A DNA stretch of 56,221 bases, filler included, from Platydemus manokwari (taxonomy: Eukaryota): the NCBI GenBank assembly GCA_037951405.1. It is 4 parts of 4 records of this genome, joined end to end, with 100 filler letters (N's around TTAATTAATTAA, not from the genome) between each part and the next. Parts side by side here need not be neighbours in the genome. Positions count along the whole stretch, not along the records: positions 30,190 to 43,908 come from JBBMOY011635848.1; 3 more parts are not named here. One strand, 5' to 3'. The notes under the pieces are model-generated. The model searched no databases, was not told the origin of the DNA, and worked only from the letters and a program-made list of their open reading frames with translations. Positions 31,800 through 42,231 of this stretch are shown here, one piece after another (within the stretch, counting starts at the first letter, position 1; every line of letters begins with the position of its first letter). The position numbers and the translations under genes are program-made.

Positions 31800-32763
31800 G
31801 GCAACAAAAAGACCCGCATATTGGATCTTTTCAATGCAACTAAGTGTTACCCAGCCGACTGTCTATCGTTGAATTCAGGAAGCGGAAAAGCCTGATTTGC
31901 GTGGAGGAATTTATAATTCACAGGTTACTTTAGAACATCAAAATGCGATGTGTAACCTAATTGAAAATAACCCTCGGATCACTCTGGCTCAATTAACGGA
32001 TAAACTATTTGCTTTGTATTCGTTAGTTGTTTCTAAGACTATGGTATTTAGACACTTAGATGCAGTAACGTAAACACTGAAACAAATACGTTTTGAGCCA
32101 GAAAGGGCAAATATTCCAGAGAATATGGAGAAGCGCAAAGTGTTTGCTCAAAGATTACTCGCTTTTCAAGGTCAGAATCTCCATATTCTCTTTCTGGATG
32201 AGAGTAATCTCAATATACGAGGCACTTGGTGTAGTGCAGCTGCAGCGGGATCCAAGGGGGTTAATGCACATATGATTGGGTGTATTGGATCTCTTGGCCT
32301 AATTCACTTTGAAATGCGGCGTGGTGCATTTCATAAAGAAGATGAGCACGAATGGTTAAAAATATGCTTTCGAAAAGCATATTCTTTGTACGGAAAACCC
32401 ATTGTCCTGGTGCTAGATAATGCTCATTGCCACAGTCGTGTCGAGGAAGTGTTAATAGAAGAGAAATTTAAAGAACATTCACTCCTCCGGTAAGCACCAT
32501 ACAGCCCAATGCTCAATCTAATTGAGCAAGTTTGGTCCGTTATGAAAGTCCATATTAAACGAAATATGGCCGAAAACATTTCTTCATTATTGAATGATAA
32601 ATTCAGAGGCCAACTGACTGTAAAAGAATATCGTCTCCAATTTTTGGAAAGATATATTCAAAACGCTGTGGAGCTGATTATACCTGGATTGTGTTGCTTC
32701 TGTTTAGCATATATTCAAGGTAAGTTACCAGATGTGCTGGCGCTAGAGGACATTGAGTTCTAA
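31800..32763 (+). pseudogene. DDE transposase pseudogene (DD35E spacing)
   Basis: HTH region NPRITLAQL..KL...SVSKT..RHL. Catalytic FLDES, LVLDNAHCH and LR*APYSPMLNLIEQVWS. In-frame stops near 32071 and 32491. Confidence 0.9.
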
Positions 32764-33106: not shown

Positions 33107-34446
33107 CAAATAGTATGGAAAATGATATAGTGTCAACTCCATTGACCATTTAAAACAAATTGATGAATACCAAACCATTAATTAACAAATAATAAGTTAA
33201 TTAATGAACACAAATTGATGATTTATAAATAATCTGGTGCCTTTAAAAATCAATACAGCTCAGAAAATATAAAATATACTTCGAATTTTTAAATATTTAA
33301 ATAAATGAAGCCATTAAAGAGGAAATAAAATGCCTTTGGTGAATGACATTCTGGTAAATTTCACAGCGAGGATACATTATATATAACTGCACAGATCAAT
33401 TGAGTTCTGTCAATACATCGAGATCATCTAAGTTTTTCTTACATACTAAGGCCCCATATTTTATTGCAAGCCGGGTGGTTTCAACTGTAAATCGCTTTTT
33501 ATAGAAATCACGACTATAAACACTGTATTGATACTTTACACATACGCATGCCTGTACAGTCATTTTGGCTTGCAAACCTTGCAGTTATGTGCCGAGCAAT
33601 AAATTGTTTGGAATCAATAATCTTGGTATTTAACACCATCAACAGAAAGAAGTCCGATCAAAACATAATAATAGTTATAATTGATAAAAACTGAAATAAA
33701 TATTTTGCCCGTCGTTAATGGGGTACGTGGAAAGATTATTTGGAAATCAGAAGCATTACTTGATTCATGATAAAGCCTCAATTCATATAAAAATTCAAAC
33801 ATCACATTTCAACAAATTATCTATCAACAAATTATTGATCATTTTGGTAATCAGTTTTGATGATTTTTATGATGATTCCTGGTGCTAAAATTTCGCTTCA
33901 TTCTCATTTCGGAACCATAAAGATAAATAAAAACTTCTCCAACAAGTTAAATTACGATTTTATTTGTGTATACATTGATATATAAATAATATCACGAATT
34001 TAAACAATCTCAATACGATGTTAAAGAAATTGTTTAACTAATTAAAAAAATATTTATAAGAAGATCAATTTTAAATTTATATTTGCCACCTTATTTAAAT
34101 TTAAAGTCATTTTTAAAACATTGAAGAAAAAATAAAAAATCCGATAATGCTTTTTACTAAAATACAATAAATTGTTAGAAATATGAGAGCAGGTCAATGT
34201 AAAAATTCTCTAATATTAATCGATAATACAACAAATCTGTAAATTTTGGCACATTGACCCGGAATCAATAAAAATAAAATTTTTTATGTTTAATTGGGAT
34301 GAAAATGGGACTTTTATTTTGAGGGCAATAGTTATCATTATAATGATCCAATAAATGATAAATTTTTTGAAATCAATATAAAATGATAATAATTTATTCA
34401 TCTAAAAAGTATTAATATTGCAGTTATACTCAATTTGTTGTTGTTC

Positions 34447-35643
34447 TCAATTCGTTGTTGAAAGAAGTTTCTTTGTTTCGGCTTTTGAAATGGCAGATCT
34501 TCGATTTTTGAAATGGTTTTTCACTTTTTTACTTTCAACGCCAATTTTTTTAGCAATGGATGCAATGATTTCATTGGGTGGATTCTGATTCTTCTGGAAT
34601 TCCTCTTGGAGAATATCCAATTGATCTGGTGTAAACGTTATTCGTTGATCTCTGGCCTTGTTGGAACCTACAGGAATCCATCAAATTACAGATTAAGTTA
34701 TCAATAATCATTATTATAAGCATATTTATTTAGAAAAATTATTACTGCCGGTTTTCTTTGAGCTCGATTGCGCACATGAGGCCACCTAAAAACATAATCA
34801 TTATCGTGAATATATCTACAAACAACAATATAATAAAATATCACATATATTTGATTCTGTAGCAATAGATTCTGTCTTCTATTTTGTTCTTCTATTTGAC
34901 TGAGATACTGTAAATTCTCATATTAGATAATTGATTCTAATAATTTTTAAAAAAATCAATGAGACTTGATTATATTTATTTATATCATAAAAATAGTTGG
35001 CATTATATGATAAATATTTATCATTGTATTGGGCTTGATTCTGGAACAAATTGATGAAATGATTGAGAAATATTTTTACAAAACACGTTACGTAATGATC
35101 ATGGAAATATGGTGATGCAGAATTGAGCAGAACATCGTCAGAATTGGGCGTACTATTTGAAGATGTAAAACTACCATAATCCGATGCTGCCTGAATTGTA
35201 GATTATTAAAATAATATATCATTTGAAATTCTCCCATATTACGTCATATCCATTGGAAATATGAGGATTACAATTGATTATTCTGATATTGTTCTGGTAT
35301 GGATTCAATTGCTGGAAATAACAATCAAATAATTTTATTTTATCTATGAAAATAATCACTGGATTGACATAATGATTGTTTGAATTATTGATATTATGAA
35401 AATATGGCATCATGTTTTGGTTGCCCATGGTGATTGGTGGATTCTAGAAAATCAATCGATAAAAAATCATATTTGGTGGAATATTGCACAAATTCATTGT
35501 ATAAATGATATCATTGTAATTACATTGGCATAATACGTCTGTGATTGATGTGCATATTCATTTGGAAAAGATAATTGAGTGATTAAATTATTCTGATAAT
35601 AACCATATTGTGTGGTTAAAGGATTTTTCGGGCAATTATTTAT
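34447..35643 (-). CDS. Divergent homeobox transcription factor (multi-exon, N/Q/Y-rich N-terminus, C-terminal homeodomain); 5' end unresolved
   Basis: Last exon 34447-34667 encodes ARDQRITFTPDQLDILQEEFQKNQNPPNEIIASIAKKIGVESKKVKNHFKNRRSAISKAE (R5, F8, L16, F20, F49, N51, R53). Upstream exons 34746-34785, 34845-34907 and about five more splice in frame with GT-AG introns. Confidence 0.8.
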
Positions 35644-38317
35644 CTAAGTGATAGTCAACTAATTTTCTTTCCCGTTTATTATTAGATTATTACTTGATAA
35701 TTATTATTCATAACTATATATGTTAATCACTACCAAAATCGGCAACAATTAATGAAATTTAAAAACAAAATTGTTTTTTTTTAATTTAAATATTCACTTA
35801 AAATCTACTTTATGAATTCGTTGCAATTTAAAACAAATTATTTTGTACTTTTAAATTAATTGAAATCCTTGAGTTTAATTTCATCGGATCTCCTGCATTT
35901 ATCCATTCTTATTTTATTATTATTATCTATGAAATTATAAATATTTTTTGAAAGTTTACAAGCGCTAATTTTTTTTATGCCTTTTGTTTTTTAAAATAAT
36001 TTTTTAATTTCCAAATCGACATTTTAAATCCATGATTTCAAAATAAATTATTTCGATATAGTTATAATATATAAATTATTATTATAAAATTATTATATTA
36101 TACTATCATAATTAGCCGACCAAAATTATTCATACATACTTACACAGATAGAGCTACTAATATCGGTTTTTATTTTCGAATATTTTTATTGTCATTCATA
36201 CATTTATTTTGTGTATACTATGATGACGATTGCTTTATGGTGCTAGAAGAATTAGAAATCAATACAAAACATAAATTAAATATATAGGGTTTATCGATAT
36301 TTATTAAAGAATGTTTATCTAGATCTTCTCTCTTATGATACGTATAATTGTGTTGGATAAGTAAAGCCTACGTTTAGACTTAAACGTTTATTGACTCTGA
36401 ATAGTGCTACTCAGCACTAACATAACCAAAAAACCGGTACATTAAATATGTTTGATTGGTTTCCACTAACAATAGACCATATTTGCATTGCAATTTATAG
36501 TCGGATGTTAATGTGTATTGATTGTGTTTACCAGGTTACTTTTGATTGGTCGGTTAACATGTAATCAAAAGTAAGTAACTAAGTTTAAAAATTTTCTAAA
36601 AACTCTTCGTTAATTATTTGAATTGTTTTGTTTCTTATTAAATAAATAAACAAAAAATGTTTCCTATTCAAATGCAATAACTTTAACGAAAAATCTTGAT
36701 CAAAGAATATTTATCATGCTCGTCATTGTTGATGAAATGTGGTATTTGAAGTGCTTGACATTCGTTTTATCTTTCAAAAAACTCATTTAAATGTTATCTT
36801 TATTAATTTAAAATAAACAAACTGAGATCTTTGAAATGTCTTGAAAATTATCAAAAATCATTTTCAACTACTTCATTATAATATTTTTATTATAATTAAT
36901 CTCATTTCGAAATTATAACTGAAAGCCATTTTTGAAATTTATACCCAAATGCTCCATTGATCAAATATAAATACTTATCTTTTTCTAATATATCTGTAAC
37001 AAATGAGAGCAAGTTTATTGATAATTATGAGTGATTTGCAGAAATTTTTGAGTATTAGCTTTCTCCAAGATTCCAACCTTCAAAGTTTTCCAAGCAATCA
37101 TTCGATAGGATTCGCACATCACTGAAATCCAATCAAGGAGATGGGGAATATTATAAATTAAAGTAAATATATTATTATATTGTGAGAATAATGCGAATTT
37201 TGAATTTTTCTTTTGATAATTTTGGAAATATTGTAAATTTAAAATTTTTCATGCGGTTGAGTATTTTTCCTAAACTTGGTGGGGATAATGCTTAATTTTC
37301 ATTAAAATGGATGAAAGAAATTCGAAAACACTCATTATGCGTTAGATTTTCTGACGACAATTCTTTTTTGATATTTATCTTTCGTTTGGTCTGATCTCGC
37401 AGGATATTTTTGTCATTGTTTATGATTTAGTCATTTTGTGTCTCCACAAATTTTTATAATATCATGTTATACGTTATTACACAAGTGATTATGTAATTTC
37501 ATAACTTTAAAGAAACTTTAATTTTTGGTAAATTATGATTTTCTAGATCGGATTTGTGTCTTTTATAGTGAAAACAAGAAAACTTAATATTCTAGTTTCA
37601 AAATATTTTCATATTTAACTATTCTGATACCAAATATTTCTTTTATAGAAATGAAACTGTTGATTAAATTAAGAGTCCTCAGCAGGGTAATATTCTAACA
37701 ATAAATTCCCAACATTTTAAACTGCAATATACTATTCATACAATTTTCATTCTTTATCTGAATTCTCCAATAGAAAATCACACAAATAAATTAATAGTTC
37801 TTATAAGTTTATTCAAAGATTAGACTTAAATTAAACGATTTATGAACAGTTTTGCATTTACATTTATATTAATATTAAAAGATCGCATCGGGTTAGTTAT
37901 TTGGTATCAAGATCGAGGAAATGAGGTGAGATTTAATTTATGTTTACTATTTCAGGACCTCGGTACTTTATCATAAATAAAAATTATTGAAAGGAATATT
38001 CATCGGTATAAAATTATTTAAAAAACCTTTAATTGATTTTAAATTAAGAATAGAGTTTCAATATCAATAAAGGTAATTACATCAGGATTAATTAATATAG
38101 TTTATAAAGAATTTCACAGATTGATAAAAAAAATCAAAATTTCTTACATTTCAGTGTTGTATTTTTCGTTTTTAATCAGCAATCGATTTTTATATTTTTT
38201 TGAGTTTTATCGGCAATTTATTTACATGTAATTTTAAATATTTAATTCTTACATAATTATATTTTTTTCGTTTAAATAAACCAATTTTATCTTCAAACAT
38301 TTACCGAAAATTCAAAT

Positions 38318-40201
38318 ATGTTATATAAAATTACTGATTTTGAAAATTTTATAAAAATCGGTGAAGGTATTTGTTTCCATTTCGAAATTTTAACTAAGGA
38401 TTTATATTTCCGGATCTTTCAACAGGTTCTTATGGTGTTGTTTGTAAAGCTATAAATAAAATTACAGGGAAATTGGTGGCCATTAAACAATTTATCATTC
38501 GAAACGATGATAATGGAATACCAAGTACCTGTTTGAGAGAACTTTCTATACTCAAAGAACTTCAACATCCAAATATTATCTGGTAATGATTTGTTTACCA
38601 AAATGGATCTTGAATCCTGTAATTTTCAGCATGGAGCAAGTGTTAACTTGCGATAAAAAGCTGTGTTTACTGTTCGAATATATGGATATGGATCTTAAAA
38701 GATTTTTGGTGACTTATGAGAACAATATCGCTTTAACTAAAACATTCAGTTATCAAATCATGCAAGGTCTTCTTTATTGTCACGGAAAACGAATAATTCA
38801 TCGTGATTTGAAACCAGAGAACTTATTGATTGATTTACATAAATTGATAATTAAAATAGCGGATTTCGGATTGGCAAGAACAGTGACAATTCCCGTGAAA
38901 CCATACACTCATGAGGTAGTGGTTCTAGTAAAATGGATTTAATGTTTTCTCGTATATTCATTGCTTAACACCATTATTGATAAAACGATTCGAATTCTAT
39001 TAATAATAATCCATTAGGTTATGACGCTTCATTATCGAGCACCGGAAATTATGTTAGGCTGTGGGAAATATTCGTTTCCAATCGATGTTTGGTCTGTAGC
39101 TTGCATTATGGCAGAAATGCTCACAGGCCATGTTCTATTTTTAGGAGACTCTGAAATCGGTCAGTTGTTTGCCATTTTTAGAATACTCGGCACTCCCGAT
39201 ACCGATAGTTGGCCTGATTTCTATGAACTGACAACTTGGAAGACAGAATTTCCTAATTGGAAGAATTCGTTGATGAAAGTGTTCGGAGACGATGTGGATA
39301 AATTATTCTTAGATTTATTGAGTGTAAGTTATTTTATTTATTTATTTTTCTTTATATTTTTCTGTAATATTCTAATGTTCTGCACACGAGAACATTTGAT
39401 ATTGAATAAAATCAATCATTTATATTTTCTAACTGAATCTCTATGATGAGCATGTTTTGAAATTGCAAATCAGATTGGTATCTATAATAATTATCATGAC
39501 ATTTTTTCGTGAGGTTTGGTGGACGAGTATCAGAAATTTTTAGAATCCATTATAATGTGTGTGTAACAAGTTAGCATAATCCAAACCAACGGTTTAATGC
39601 AATGAGTTTAAATCATCTGGATAGGTATAAATTGTCTGGTTAAATTCGAGTTCTTAATGACTAACATTGCTCCATTTGTCAAATTATAAGAAATCATTTT
39701 GAGATATTATTGATCATCTTATTTATTTTTGATAACCAATCGTATCACACGCATATTAATCTTTCACCAATGATTAACTCCGGTAATATCACTGTTGTAT
39801 TGATTTTTTGTAGCCACAAATCCATGAACATTTACTAATTTATTTCAATCCAATATATTAAACTGAATGATTGAGAACATCGAGCGCGTTATCATGTAAT
39901 TGTTTAGCTTATAAATTGTTATCCAATTATCGAATAGAACGATAATTTGTCTTTATAATTCTTATACTAACATCACGGATTATAGTGTATTTTTGTGTGC
40001 ACAATTATTAATATTGTGGCTTATCGATTGTCATTTTAGAAAATGTTGATTTATACTCCTGAAAATCGAGCTACACTACGAGATGCTCTTTATCATGAAT
40101 TCTTCGACGATCTAGACAAATCGTCTCTACCAGCAACAGACGAAGAAAAGCGTATGAATACCGAACTGATGTTTGAGTCATTATTGAATTCTTCAAATTA
40201 G
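38318..40201 (+). CDS. CDK1: CDK1-like cyclin-dependent kinase (5 exons), divergent PSTCLRE variant
   Basis: IGEG|[59 protein letters not shown]|[18 protein letters not shown]. Last exon KMLIY.P..R...[23 protein letters not shown] after the stop. Confidence 0.9.
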
Positions 40202-40706: not shown

Positions 40707-42231
40707 TCAATGTCTTGTGATGAAATTGTGTTTGAGAACATCTCCTAGAATCAATTGAAATTAACTAATGAATTATAGATAATATAATTGGTAACCTGCA
40801 AAATATCTGTTGGATGGATGTAATTCCAGCATCTTGGAAATCAATTGAGACAATTCTTCTGAACCATGTTGTGAGTAACTAAAACGGATTTCATTGTTTA
40901 TTTATTTCCCCAGCAAAGCGTCTTACTCCAAATCATTAATATTCTTTGACATCATGTAACACACGATTATTCCTAAACTCCATATGTCGACATTGCAATT
41001 AGAATCTTTTCGTGCTACTAATTCAGGTGCCTGATTGATATCATACATTAATGGAATAATATATATTTTACCATGAAGTATTGATTACCAATCGAGGTCA
41101 TTCCATAGGCGTACTTTATAATTTTTGATATTCCAAAATCAGCTGAATAAAATTATTCTCGTTGAATTTTGAACAATTAACTGTTACATTTATTATTTTA
41201 TATGTACATGAATACTGAATGTGAAATAATATTTTCTGAAAATAATTATCAAGCATCCAATCAGAATGACTCAATAATTGTTACTAAATTTATATTTGAA
41301 ATTTCATTGGGTTTCGTGTAATAACTTTGACATTATTTATTCATTTTTCAAATGTATTCATTGTTTTGAAATCATGGAAATCAGAATGACTCAATAATTG
41401 TTGCTAAATTTAGATTTGGAATTTCATTTGGTTTCATTTTTCAGACATTATTTCCATTCATTTTTTAACATTATTTATCATTTTGAAATATTGATATCGA
41501 TTATTAATTAATTATTCATTCAATCTCACCAATTTTATAACTTATTTGATTTTGTGGACGCTTTATGAGGATATTTAGTGGCTTGATATCACGATGAACA
41601 ACATTATTATGGTGGAGGTATTTCAATCCATTGGCTTAATTGAAAGGCATTAATATTTCATTTATTAGCACATTTGTTCCTTACCTATTTGACGAACGAA
41701 ATTTCGAATTTCACCTTCAGTAATTTCTCTGCCTTCAATGAAATATTTAATAATTCAAATAATTTTCGTCAAATGTCTCACCAACACTTCGAATTCTATC
41801 TTCAAGATCTTCATCGCATGGTTCCATAATCAAGAATAATTTTCCATTTAAAATCTGAATAAATGAGCTCAATAATTTATTCGGATATAATGTTAAAGAA
41901 AATTGACTTCGTGATCCAGCAGCCGCACGATGTTCTTACAATTCAAGCCCTTGTTATATATTTATAATATAATTGCTAAAATTAACTGAATTACTTGTAT
42001 GTGTTCTATTTCTGATTTTTGATTGTTATAATTATCATTGAGATAAAAGTTATCAATAACTTTGATTGCAACCTCTTTACTTGTCTGTAATTACATACAA
42101 GATTACAAAAAAGAATCAAGAATGTATAAAATACTCACTTTATTATTTCTGCCTCGATATACATATCCAAAAGCACCTTTTCCAAGAAAATCTTTTTTAT
42201 TATATCCATAATATCCGATATTCCACAACAT
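40707..42231 (-). CDS. Ser/Thr protein kinase, ULK/Atg1-like, kinase domain only (~245 aa, about 10 short exons)
   Basis: Spliced: MLWNIGYYGYNKKDFLGKGAFGYVYRGRNNK|TSKEVAIKVID...EIEHIQ|GLNCKNIVRLLDHE|ILNGKLFLIMEPCDEDL...|...VRQI|ANGLKYLHHNNVVHRDIKPLNILI...YKI|ADFGISK...SIGNQYFM|APELV...VDIWSLG...|...LISKMLELHPSNRYFA|GDVLKHNFITRH*. All junctions are GT-AG and in phase. Confidence 0.85.
41259..41490. repeat. ~120-bp tandem duplication inside a kinase intron
   Basis: TCAGAATGACTCAATAATTGTT.CTAAATTTA.ATTTG.AATTTCATT.GGTTTC at 41261 and again at 41381. Confidence 0.85.

Follow-up and report, generated by a model that had tools for sequence, protein, structure and literature searches.

A predicted PRD-like K50 homeobox gene of Platydemus manokwari with histidine at the hallmark tryptophan position of its homeodomain

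A 56,221-nucleotide stretch of DNA from Platydemus manokwari (here called the window) encodes, on its minus strand, a homeodomain in which the hallmark tryptophan of position 48 is replaced by histidine. We propose that this domain probably belongs to a functional, taxonomically restricted homeobox gene with a product of about 262 amino acids, which carries a PRD-like homeodomain with lysine at position 50 (K50) and would act as a sequence-specific transcription factor. The argument rests on the domain itself, on the spliced gene model around it, and on one close relative that also does without tryptophan 48.

A homeodomain with histidine at position 48

Translation of the minus strand fits the 60-residue homeodomain register without gaps, with R5, F8, Q12, L16, F20, F49, K50, N51, and R53 in place, N47 and H48 as first described, and a helix 3 that reads VKNHFKNRR. 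The initial annotation had described both the ungapped register and this helix, and both can be read directly from the translation. Its assignment of the segment to the homeodomains is likewise borne out by Pfam. Profile PF00046 matches the 73-amino-acid exon over profile positions 1 to 53 of 57 with an E value of 4.4e-15 and 55.7 bits, against a curated cutoff of 22.9 bits, and the match is therefore far beyond chance.

The codon of position 48 reads ATG on the plus strand and hence CAT on the minus strand, three substitutions away from TGG. That a single base-call error could not explain the histidine had been argued from these three substitutions, and a separate build now agrees. A Logan contig of run X1 (depth of about 11) spans positions 34300 to 34922 with zero listed differences, and so the unusual codon is no slip peculiar to the assembly, X1 being the sole public run with this DNA, one that is not recorded as RNA, and probably derived from the same sample as the assembly. 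A variant genetic code or editing was also considered as the source of histidine for tryptophan and was rejected: a neighboring kinase gene has CAT at the invariant histidine of its HRD motif and TGG at conserved tryptophans, and thus the ordinary genetic code applies.

Of the signature residues L16, F20, W48, F49, N51, and R53, five of six are present, and W48 is the exception, being His here and Cys in the relative described below. Because Phe or Tyr may also stand at position 48 under the family definition (PMC4901127), the sequence places the window domain as an atypical member of the homeodomain superfamily rather than as a nonmember. Several residues that usually contact the DNA backbone are altered as well (Y25 to N, R31 to I, and K57 to S), and these changes may weaken DNA binding.

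Structure of the predicted gene

The homeodomain is encoded in the last of nine predicted exons, which join in frame and are separated by eight predicted GT-AG introns of 48 to 80 nt each (Table 1). GC content is 32% in the exons versus 19 to 27% in the introns and about 25% in the whole piece. The acceptor of exon 8, at 34785, keeps the frame, and the corresponding 40-nt exon of the relative agrees with it. In a dynamic-programming analysis, the best spliced open reading frame (ORF) score for the real upstream region was 792 versus 298 ± 113 for 300 first-order Markov sequences modeled on the upstream 1,300 nt, the reading frame being required to end at the homeobox exon; none of the 300 reached the real score. 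The initial count of about eight in-frame exons thus holds, with eight exons found in addition to a putative 18-nt first exon. An ORF track had been said to miss the domain entirely, and this is accurate for the N-terminal part only, since a 57-amino-acid, TTG-started ORF at 34447 to 34620 covers homeodomain residues 13 to 60. We infer the expression of the gene, its DNA binding, its target site, and its start codon.

Table 1. Coordinates of the predicted homeobox gene, its elements, and neighboring features, counted along the window
Feature	Coordinates	Strand	Remarks
Homeodomain, 60 residues	34477..34656	(-)	Translation ARDQRITFTPDQLDILQEEFQKNQNPPNEIIASIAKKIGVESKKVKNHFKNRRSAISKAE; Pfam PF00046 match
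His48 codon, CAT	34513..34515	(-)	Plus strand ATG; L001 has TGC (Cys)
Putative exon 1, 18 nt, MNNNYQ	35694..35711	(-)	ATG, putative start, picked independently by the spliced-ORF dynamic program; donor CAA/gtaataat
Exon 2, 120 nt, phase 0	35524..35643	(-)	N/Q/Y-rich; open frame between cacttag/ and /gtaattac; without Pfam match
Exon 3, 84 nt	35360..35443	(-)	Open frame, splice sites; without Pfam match
Intron, 48 nt	35312..35359	(-)	Open in frame; precedes exon 4
Exon 4, 69 nt	35243..35311	(-)	Open frame, splice sites
Exon 5, 99 nt	35092..35190	(-)	Open frame, splice sites
Exon 6, 75 nt	34966..35040	(-)	Open frame, splice sites
Exon 7, 63 nt	34845..34907	(-)	YLSQIEEQNRRQNLLLQNQIY; homologous to 72-nt exon of L001 (39-110), same phase
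Exon 8, 40 nt, followed by phase-1 intron	34746..34785	(-)	Ser-rich linker; L001 exon exactly 40 nt (162-201), same place and phase
Exon 9, whole homeodomain, 16-residue tail, and stop	34447..34667	(-)	Pfam PF00046; 60% identity to L001 exon 251-465; X1 contig
TGA stop codon	34447..34449	(-)	End of the 262-residue reading frame
3' untranslated region (UTR) block	34410..34427	(-)	ATAACTGCAATATTAATA, also written ATAACTGCA(AT/G)ATTAATA; about 20 nt past the stop; conserved with L001 at about 481-498; introns unalignable
AATAAA	34393..34398		Near the 3' UTR block
Tc1/mariner-type DDE_3 transposase remnant	31897..32763	(+)	ORFs of 58, 122, and 84 aa in the same frame, split by stops
CDK1/2-like kinase gene	38586..40201	(+)	About 50% identical to human CDK1/2
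His codon CAT of TLHYRAPE	39030..39032		In the CDK1/2-like kinase gene
Second protein-kinase gene	40923..42231	(-)	Several short exons; in convergent orientation to the CDK gene

Tryptophan is wholly absent from the predicted 262-residue protein, in which Asn, Ser, Gln, and Tyr are abundant. Exon-by-exon Pfam searches, which are a weak test in a low-complexity region rich in N, Q, Y, and S, found no SIX, CUT, paired, or any other domain in exons 2 to 7, in keeping with the earlier remark that no SIX domain lies upstream. Within the 13.7-kb piece of the window that holds the gene, tblastn detected no homeobox paralogues, and there was no Rfam match.

In seven of the nine exons the length is an exact multiple of three, and some introns, too, have lengths divisible by three and are open in frame. 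One of these, the 48-nt intron before exon 4, is ambiguous between intron and coding sequence from the DNA alone. With exons that are multiples of three and at least one in-frame open intron (48 nt), intron retention would therefore preserve the reading frame. Downstream of the stop codon, the conserved 3' UTR block may be a polyadenylation or regulatory element.

The one close relative

A HMMER search of 1.84 billion representative proteins yielded 406 matches at E ≤ 0.001, most of which ranked high through many homeodomains each, and all 406 were rescored domain by domain. By this measure P0013, a 63-amino-acid protein that scores 74 bits, is the sole close relative; no other single domain exceeds 36.7 bits, the level of a generic homeodomain. 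The next-best matches are a mixture of ZFHX-type domains (VVQVWFQN), a TALE-type domain (WFINAR), TVNAWFQNKR domains that look fungal, and a "cone-rod homeobox-like" protein of Tetranychus that reads NWFKNRR. Word-index protein searches with the 73-amino-acid exon and with a two-sequence profile, which covered fragments of about 40 to 128 amino acids, found nothing beyond P0013, and zero relatives came from a JGI metagenome scan with peptide patterns or from a degenerate DNA pattern for VKN[HC]FKN[RK]RS[AS]I. The suggestion that the gene is lineage specific is thus supported, with one close relative among the 1.84 billion representatives.

P0013 is encoded on L001, a contig of 577 nt from a metagenome assembly in ENA; L001 shares the last three exons and their intron phases with the window gene. 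The third-last exon has 72 nt in L001 and 63 nt in the window and is followed by an intron of 51 and 59 nt, respectively; the second-last exon has 40 nt in both; the phase-1 intron has 49 nt in L001 and 78 nt in the window; and the homeobox exon, including the stop, has 215 and 221 nt. In the 70 codons of the last exon that align without gaps, 42 residues (60%) agree, and identity at codon positions 1, 2, and 3 is 73%, 76%, and 44%. Nucleotide identity is 64% in the last exon and about 36% in the upstream segment made up of the 40-nt exon and the introns. Nei-Gojobori estimates for the last exon are a pN of 0.23 and a pS of 0.84, a value at which synonymous sites are saturated, and neither the window copy nor L001, over its 577 nt, contains stops or frameshifts. 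A low pN beside a saturated pS, together with intact frames, therefore indicates that the protein has been held by purifying selection across a long divergence, and saturated synonymous change may also be compatible with a recent relaxation of constraint in the window copy.

Helix 3 of L001 reads VKNCFKNKR, so that position 48 is Cys (TGC) and the VKN-x-FKN frame around it is identical in both copies. With His48 in one copy and Cys48 in the other, Trp was therefore lost before the two diverged, and the position has changed again since. L001 could be an orthologue in a different species or a paralogue of long standing, and the ancestral loss of Trp would be independent of which. The change from TGG to TGY takes one step and that from TGY to CAT at least two more, for instance via Tyr, which is accepted at position 48 (PMC4901127). 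The initial annotation had allowed that orthologues might all carry W48 while this copy evolved neutrally; what was found instead is a relative with Cys48 and the mark of purifying selection. The two family members also have in common the base- and groove-contact residues R2, R5, K46, N47, K50, N51, and R53, and the core residues F8, L16, F20, I34, I38, V40, V45, and F49 are intact and conserved in both.

How rare is histidine 48?

According to Burglin and Affolter (2016), the core signature of the homeodomain consists of L16, F20, W48, and F49, and position 48 can be Phe or Tyr; their paper mentions neither His nor Cys at this position (PMC4901127). Similarly, a study of Zhx proteins anchored domains on W, F, or Y at position 48 (PMC7144352). 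We took a census of position 48 in 378 register-checked homeodomain stretches from the 150 best representatives. Trp occupies the position in 364 of 378 stretches, Tyr in 8, Phe in 3, Cys in 2 (one being P0013), and His in a single stretch, in P0068. Because P0068 has it too, His48 is rare and outside standard descriptions, yet not unique, and it tends toward divergent, probably fast-evolving homeobox genes.

P0068 is a metagenomic protein of 574 amino acids with three homeodomains, of which one reads VKKHF (His48) and two read VKKYF (Tyr48), while one homeodomain of P0090 reads VRRCF (Cys48). Both proteins have multiple homeodomains and only generic similarity to the window gene (25 to 30 bits), and they fall outside its family. 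P0068, P0090, P0078, and P0131, all of metagenomic origin, carry multiple homeodomains, several of them with Tyr, Phe, His, or Cys as residue 48; P0001 packs 14 homeodomain stretches into 1,666 amino acids. Such arrays form an unexplored pool of signature-breaking homeodomains.

Natural homeodomains without Trp48 are also known from ONECUT and SATB/COMPASS proteins, which have Phe, and from domains with Tyr48. Their substitutes are aromatic and hydrophobic, whereas the family described here has His or Cys. Moreover, the window gene differs from the ONECUT and SATB/COMPASS genes in that it lacks a CUT domain (by exon-wise Pfam) or a COMPASS domain and has His, not Phe, as residue 48.

Fold and class placement

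The initial annotation had allowed for altered folding or specificity and had named structure prediction as a check on the domain; AlphaFold2 gives an ordinary homeodomain fold. With the 70-residue window segment placed first in an alignment of 54 homeodomain segments, the mean pLDDT is 87.6, residue blocks 11 to 60 of the 70-residue model reach 93 to 97, and helices are modeled at homeodomain positions 10 to 22, 28 to 38, and 42 to 65. The model confidently predicts a three-helix homeodomain fold with its helix-turn-helix, as a plausibility check that is silent on domain stability, AlphaFold being insensitive to single core substitutions.

By structure, the best PDB matches in Foldseek are CRX, CDX2, GSC, DLX5, PITX2, and Paired, with TM scores of 0.75 to 0.9; CRX, CDX2, GSC, and DLX5 lead the list at 0.8 to 0.9. 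By sequence, the best PDB relatives are DUX4, Engrailed, ZFHX3, HESX1, OTX2, POU6F1, GSC, and CRX, with E values of 1e-7 to 1e-5. These sequence matches are mostly of the PRD class (DUX4, HESX1, OTX2, GSC, CRX, Prd, Al, PITX2, and PAX6), with En, ZFHX3, and POU6F1 interleaved at similar scores. The window domain thus fits a PRD-like K50 type, by a small margin over other classes. The initial impression of a PRD-like N-terminal arm can be extended to helix 1, as evidenced by DUX4, OTX2, GSC, CRX, Paired, and PITX2 among the best matches by sequence and fold.

In detail, the window gene shares with the PRD-like K50 genes (OTX/CRX, GSC, and PITX) the residues K50, N51, and R53 of helix 3, the helix 1 pattern R5-x-T-F-T-x-x-Q-L-x-x-L-x-x-x-F, and the absence of a paired domain, and these genes supply its top Foldseek matches (CRX, at TM scores of 0.84 to 0.88, and GSC) and rank among its best PDB sequence matches. 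It differs from them in having His48 rather than Trp, N47 rather than Val or Ile, N25 rather than Tyr, and I31 rather than Arg; in that no OAR or eh1/octapeptide motif was found; in the C-terminal location of its homeodomain, with just 16 residues after it; and in an identity of only 30 to 37%. DUX4 and other fast-evolving PRD-like genes resemble it in another way, being likewise taxonomically restricted and divergent, and they provide the top PDB sequence match (DUX4, E of 3e-07, its summed score coming from two domains of the target) as well as the nearest Atlas clusters. However, the window gene has a single homeodomain, and DUX domains, with Q50 or E50, retain W48.

The pair N47 and K50 (NxFKNRR) had been called SIX-like, and the residues are indeed those of the SIX class, but the likeness seems to be coincidental. 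SIX homeodomains characteristically lack R5 and Q12, both of which are present in the window domain. In addition, SIX proteins keep W48, and exon-wise Pfam found no upstream SIX domain in the window gene.

We found no orthology to a named bilaterian family, such as Otx, Gsc, Pitx, or others; besides P0013, nothing among the 1.84 billion representatives exceeds 36.7 bits for a single domain. We read the gene as a predicted fast-evolving, lineage-restricted transcription factor of PRD-like K50 type. The initial proposal of a new homeobox class overstated the case, in that two sequences with generic PRD-like similarity would make an orphan family, not a class.

Proposed mechanism and alternative explanations

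The product, with a Trp-free N-terminal region rich in Asn, Gln, Tyr, and Ser and a C-terminal PRD-like K50 homeodomain, would act as a sequence-specific transcription factor. Helix 3 would lie in the major groove, to be bound by N51, K50, N47, and K46; there N51 would touch adenine, and K50 would read the bases on the 3' side of a TAAT-like core. The minor groove would be occupied by R2 and R5. K50 would confer a preference for C or G after the TAAT-like core. N47, at a position usually taken by Ile or Val, would probably shift the core preference, and in combination with the missing Y25, R31, and K57 it could leave the site shifted or weaker. Trp48 was lost before the two known members split, and the position is now His (CAT) in one and Cys (TGC) in the other; with His or Cys found amid identical VKN-x-FKN flanks, position 48 has therefore probably become permissive. 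The remaining hydrophobic core (F8, L16, F20, I34, I38, V40, V45, and F49) would hold the three-helix fold around a repacked interior.

A functional gene need not encode an autonomous DNA binder. The replacement of W48, Y25, R31, and K57, and the variation of position 48 between His and Cys while its neighbors are fixed, might instead signal a changed job, in which the loss of Trp48 and of phosphate contacts has turned the homeodomain into a protein-interaction or cofactor module like HOPX. A feature-based Atlas search does place "Homeodomain-only protein" among the nearest clusters, although its scores of only 0.87 stay below 0.9, the tool's own level for more than a lead. We consider such a module unlikely, as the retention of R2, R5, K46, N47, K50, N51, and R53 in both members would make little sense in a protein that does not bind DNA; the window model also differs from HOPX-like proteins in its length of 262 amino acids, with about 190 residues N-terminal to the domain, and in keeping R5, K50, N51, and R53. 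Quite unlikely, too, is a copy, decaying or evolving neutrally, of some canonical W48 PRD-like gene elsewhere in the genome, whether as a pseudogene or as a very young orphan. The N-terminal region is of low complexity without recognizable motifs, as such a copy might be, and the genome evolves fast, with only about 50% identity between the neighboring CDK and human CDK1/2 and with a hallmark Trp missing from that CDK too. Nevertheless, the frame is intact over nine predicted exons with good splice sites, L001 shares the exon structure and retains 60% protein identity despite saturated synonymous change and with stops in neither copy, and the relative lacks W48 too, so the loss is old and tolerated.

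His and Cys are both classic zinc ligands and are the sole two residues at position 48 in the family (two sequences), and the passage from TGC or TGT to CAT needs at least two steps and so is nontrivial. That the alternation is adaptive, with residue 48 binding a metal or sensing pH or redox state so as to switch folding or DNA binding, is nonetheless very improbable. Each domain has only the one His or Cys, with no other conserved ligand, and two sequences cannot tell adaptation from a permissive site. No new function is needed to account for the data if the path led from Trp to His through Cys and Tyr as tolerated residues; substitution by Tyr is accepted at position 48 (PMC4901127), and P0068 has Tyr48 alongside His48. 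Distinctly improbable in our judgment is the related proposal of a conserved family in which a titratable or ligand-type residue in place of the core Trp48 makes folding or DNA binding responsive to pH, redox, or metal. If true, it would offer a homeodomain that is switchable by nature and a natural experiment in how the fold persists once the most conserved residue of its core is gone. An artifact of sequencing or assembly, or a divergent SIX-class member, is exceedingly improbable: the pair N47 and K50 is of SIX type, but the second contig build agrees with the assembly, CAT and TGG differ at all three bases, exon-wise Pfam gave no SIX-domain match upstream, R5 and Q12 are present, and the best matches are PRD-like.

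Neighboring genes

The CDK1/2-like kinase gene near the homeobox gene has TLHYRAPE where CDKs have TLWYRAPE, a second change of a hallmark Trp to His less than 5 kb from the first. CLK kinases carry His at the site equivalent to this Trp, and therefore the kinase probably tolerates the change, which may be due to fast evolution of the genome or to AT pressure on it. Only one exon of the second kinase gene has a Pkinase match, and a weak one. The transposase remnant has a GC content of about 37% versus 25 to 27% around it, and with its ORFs split by stops it therefore looks decayed and is perhaps a fairly recent insertion.

Implications

On the sequence evidence, the homeobox gene is real and under constraint, and what is new here is an orphan family, PRD-like and of K50 type by prediction, with a nonaromatic residue at hallmark position 48. 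It leaves knowledge of how homeodomains work unchanged, being an unusual, not a revolutionary, variant of a very well-known domain. Trp48 has nevertheless been counted as a signature of the homeodomain and used as an alignment anchor, with only Phe and Tyr listed as substitutes (PMC4901127 and PMC7144352), and annotation rules that demand W, F, or Y there will overlook genuine homeobox genes in genomes that are AT-rich and evolve fast. A family in which position 48 drifts between His and Cys under purifying selection would be a natural test of how far the fold and DNA affinity of homeodomains depend on residue 48.
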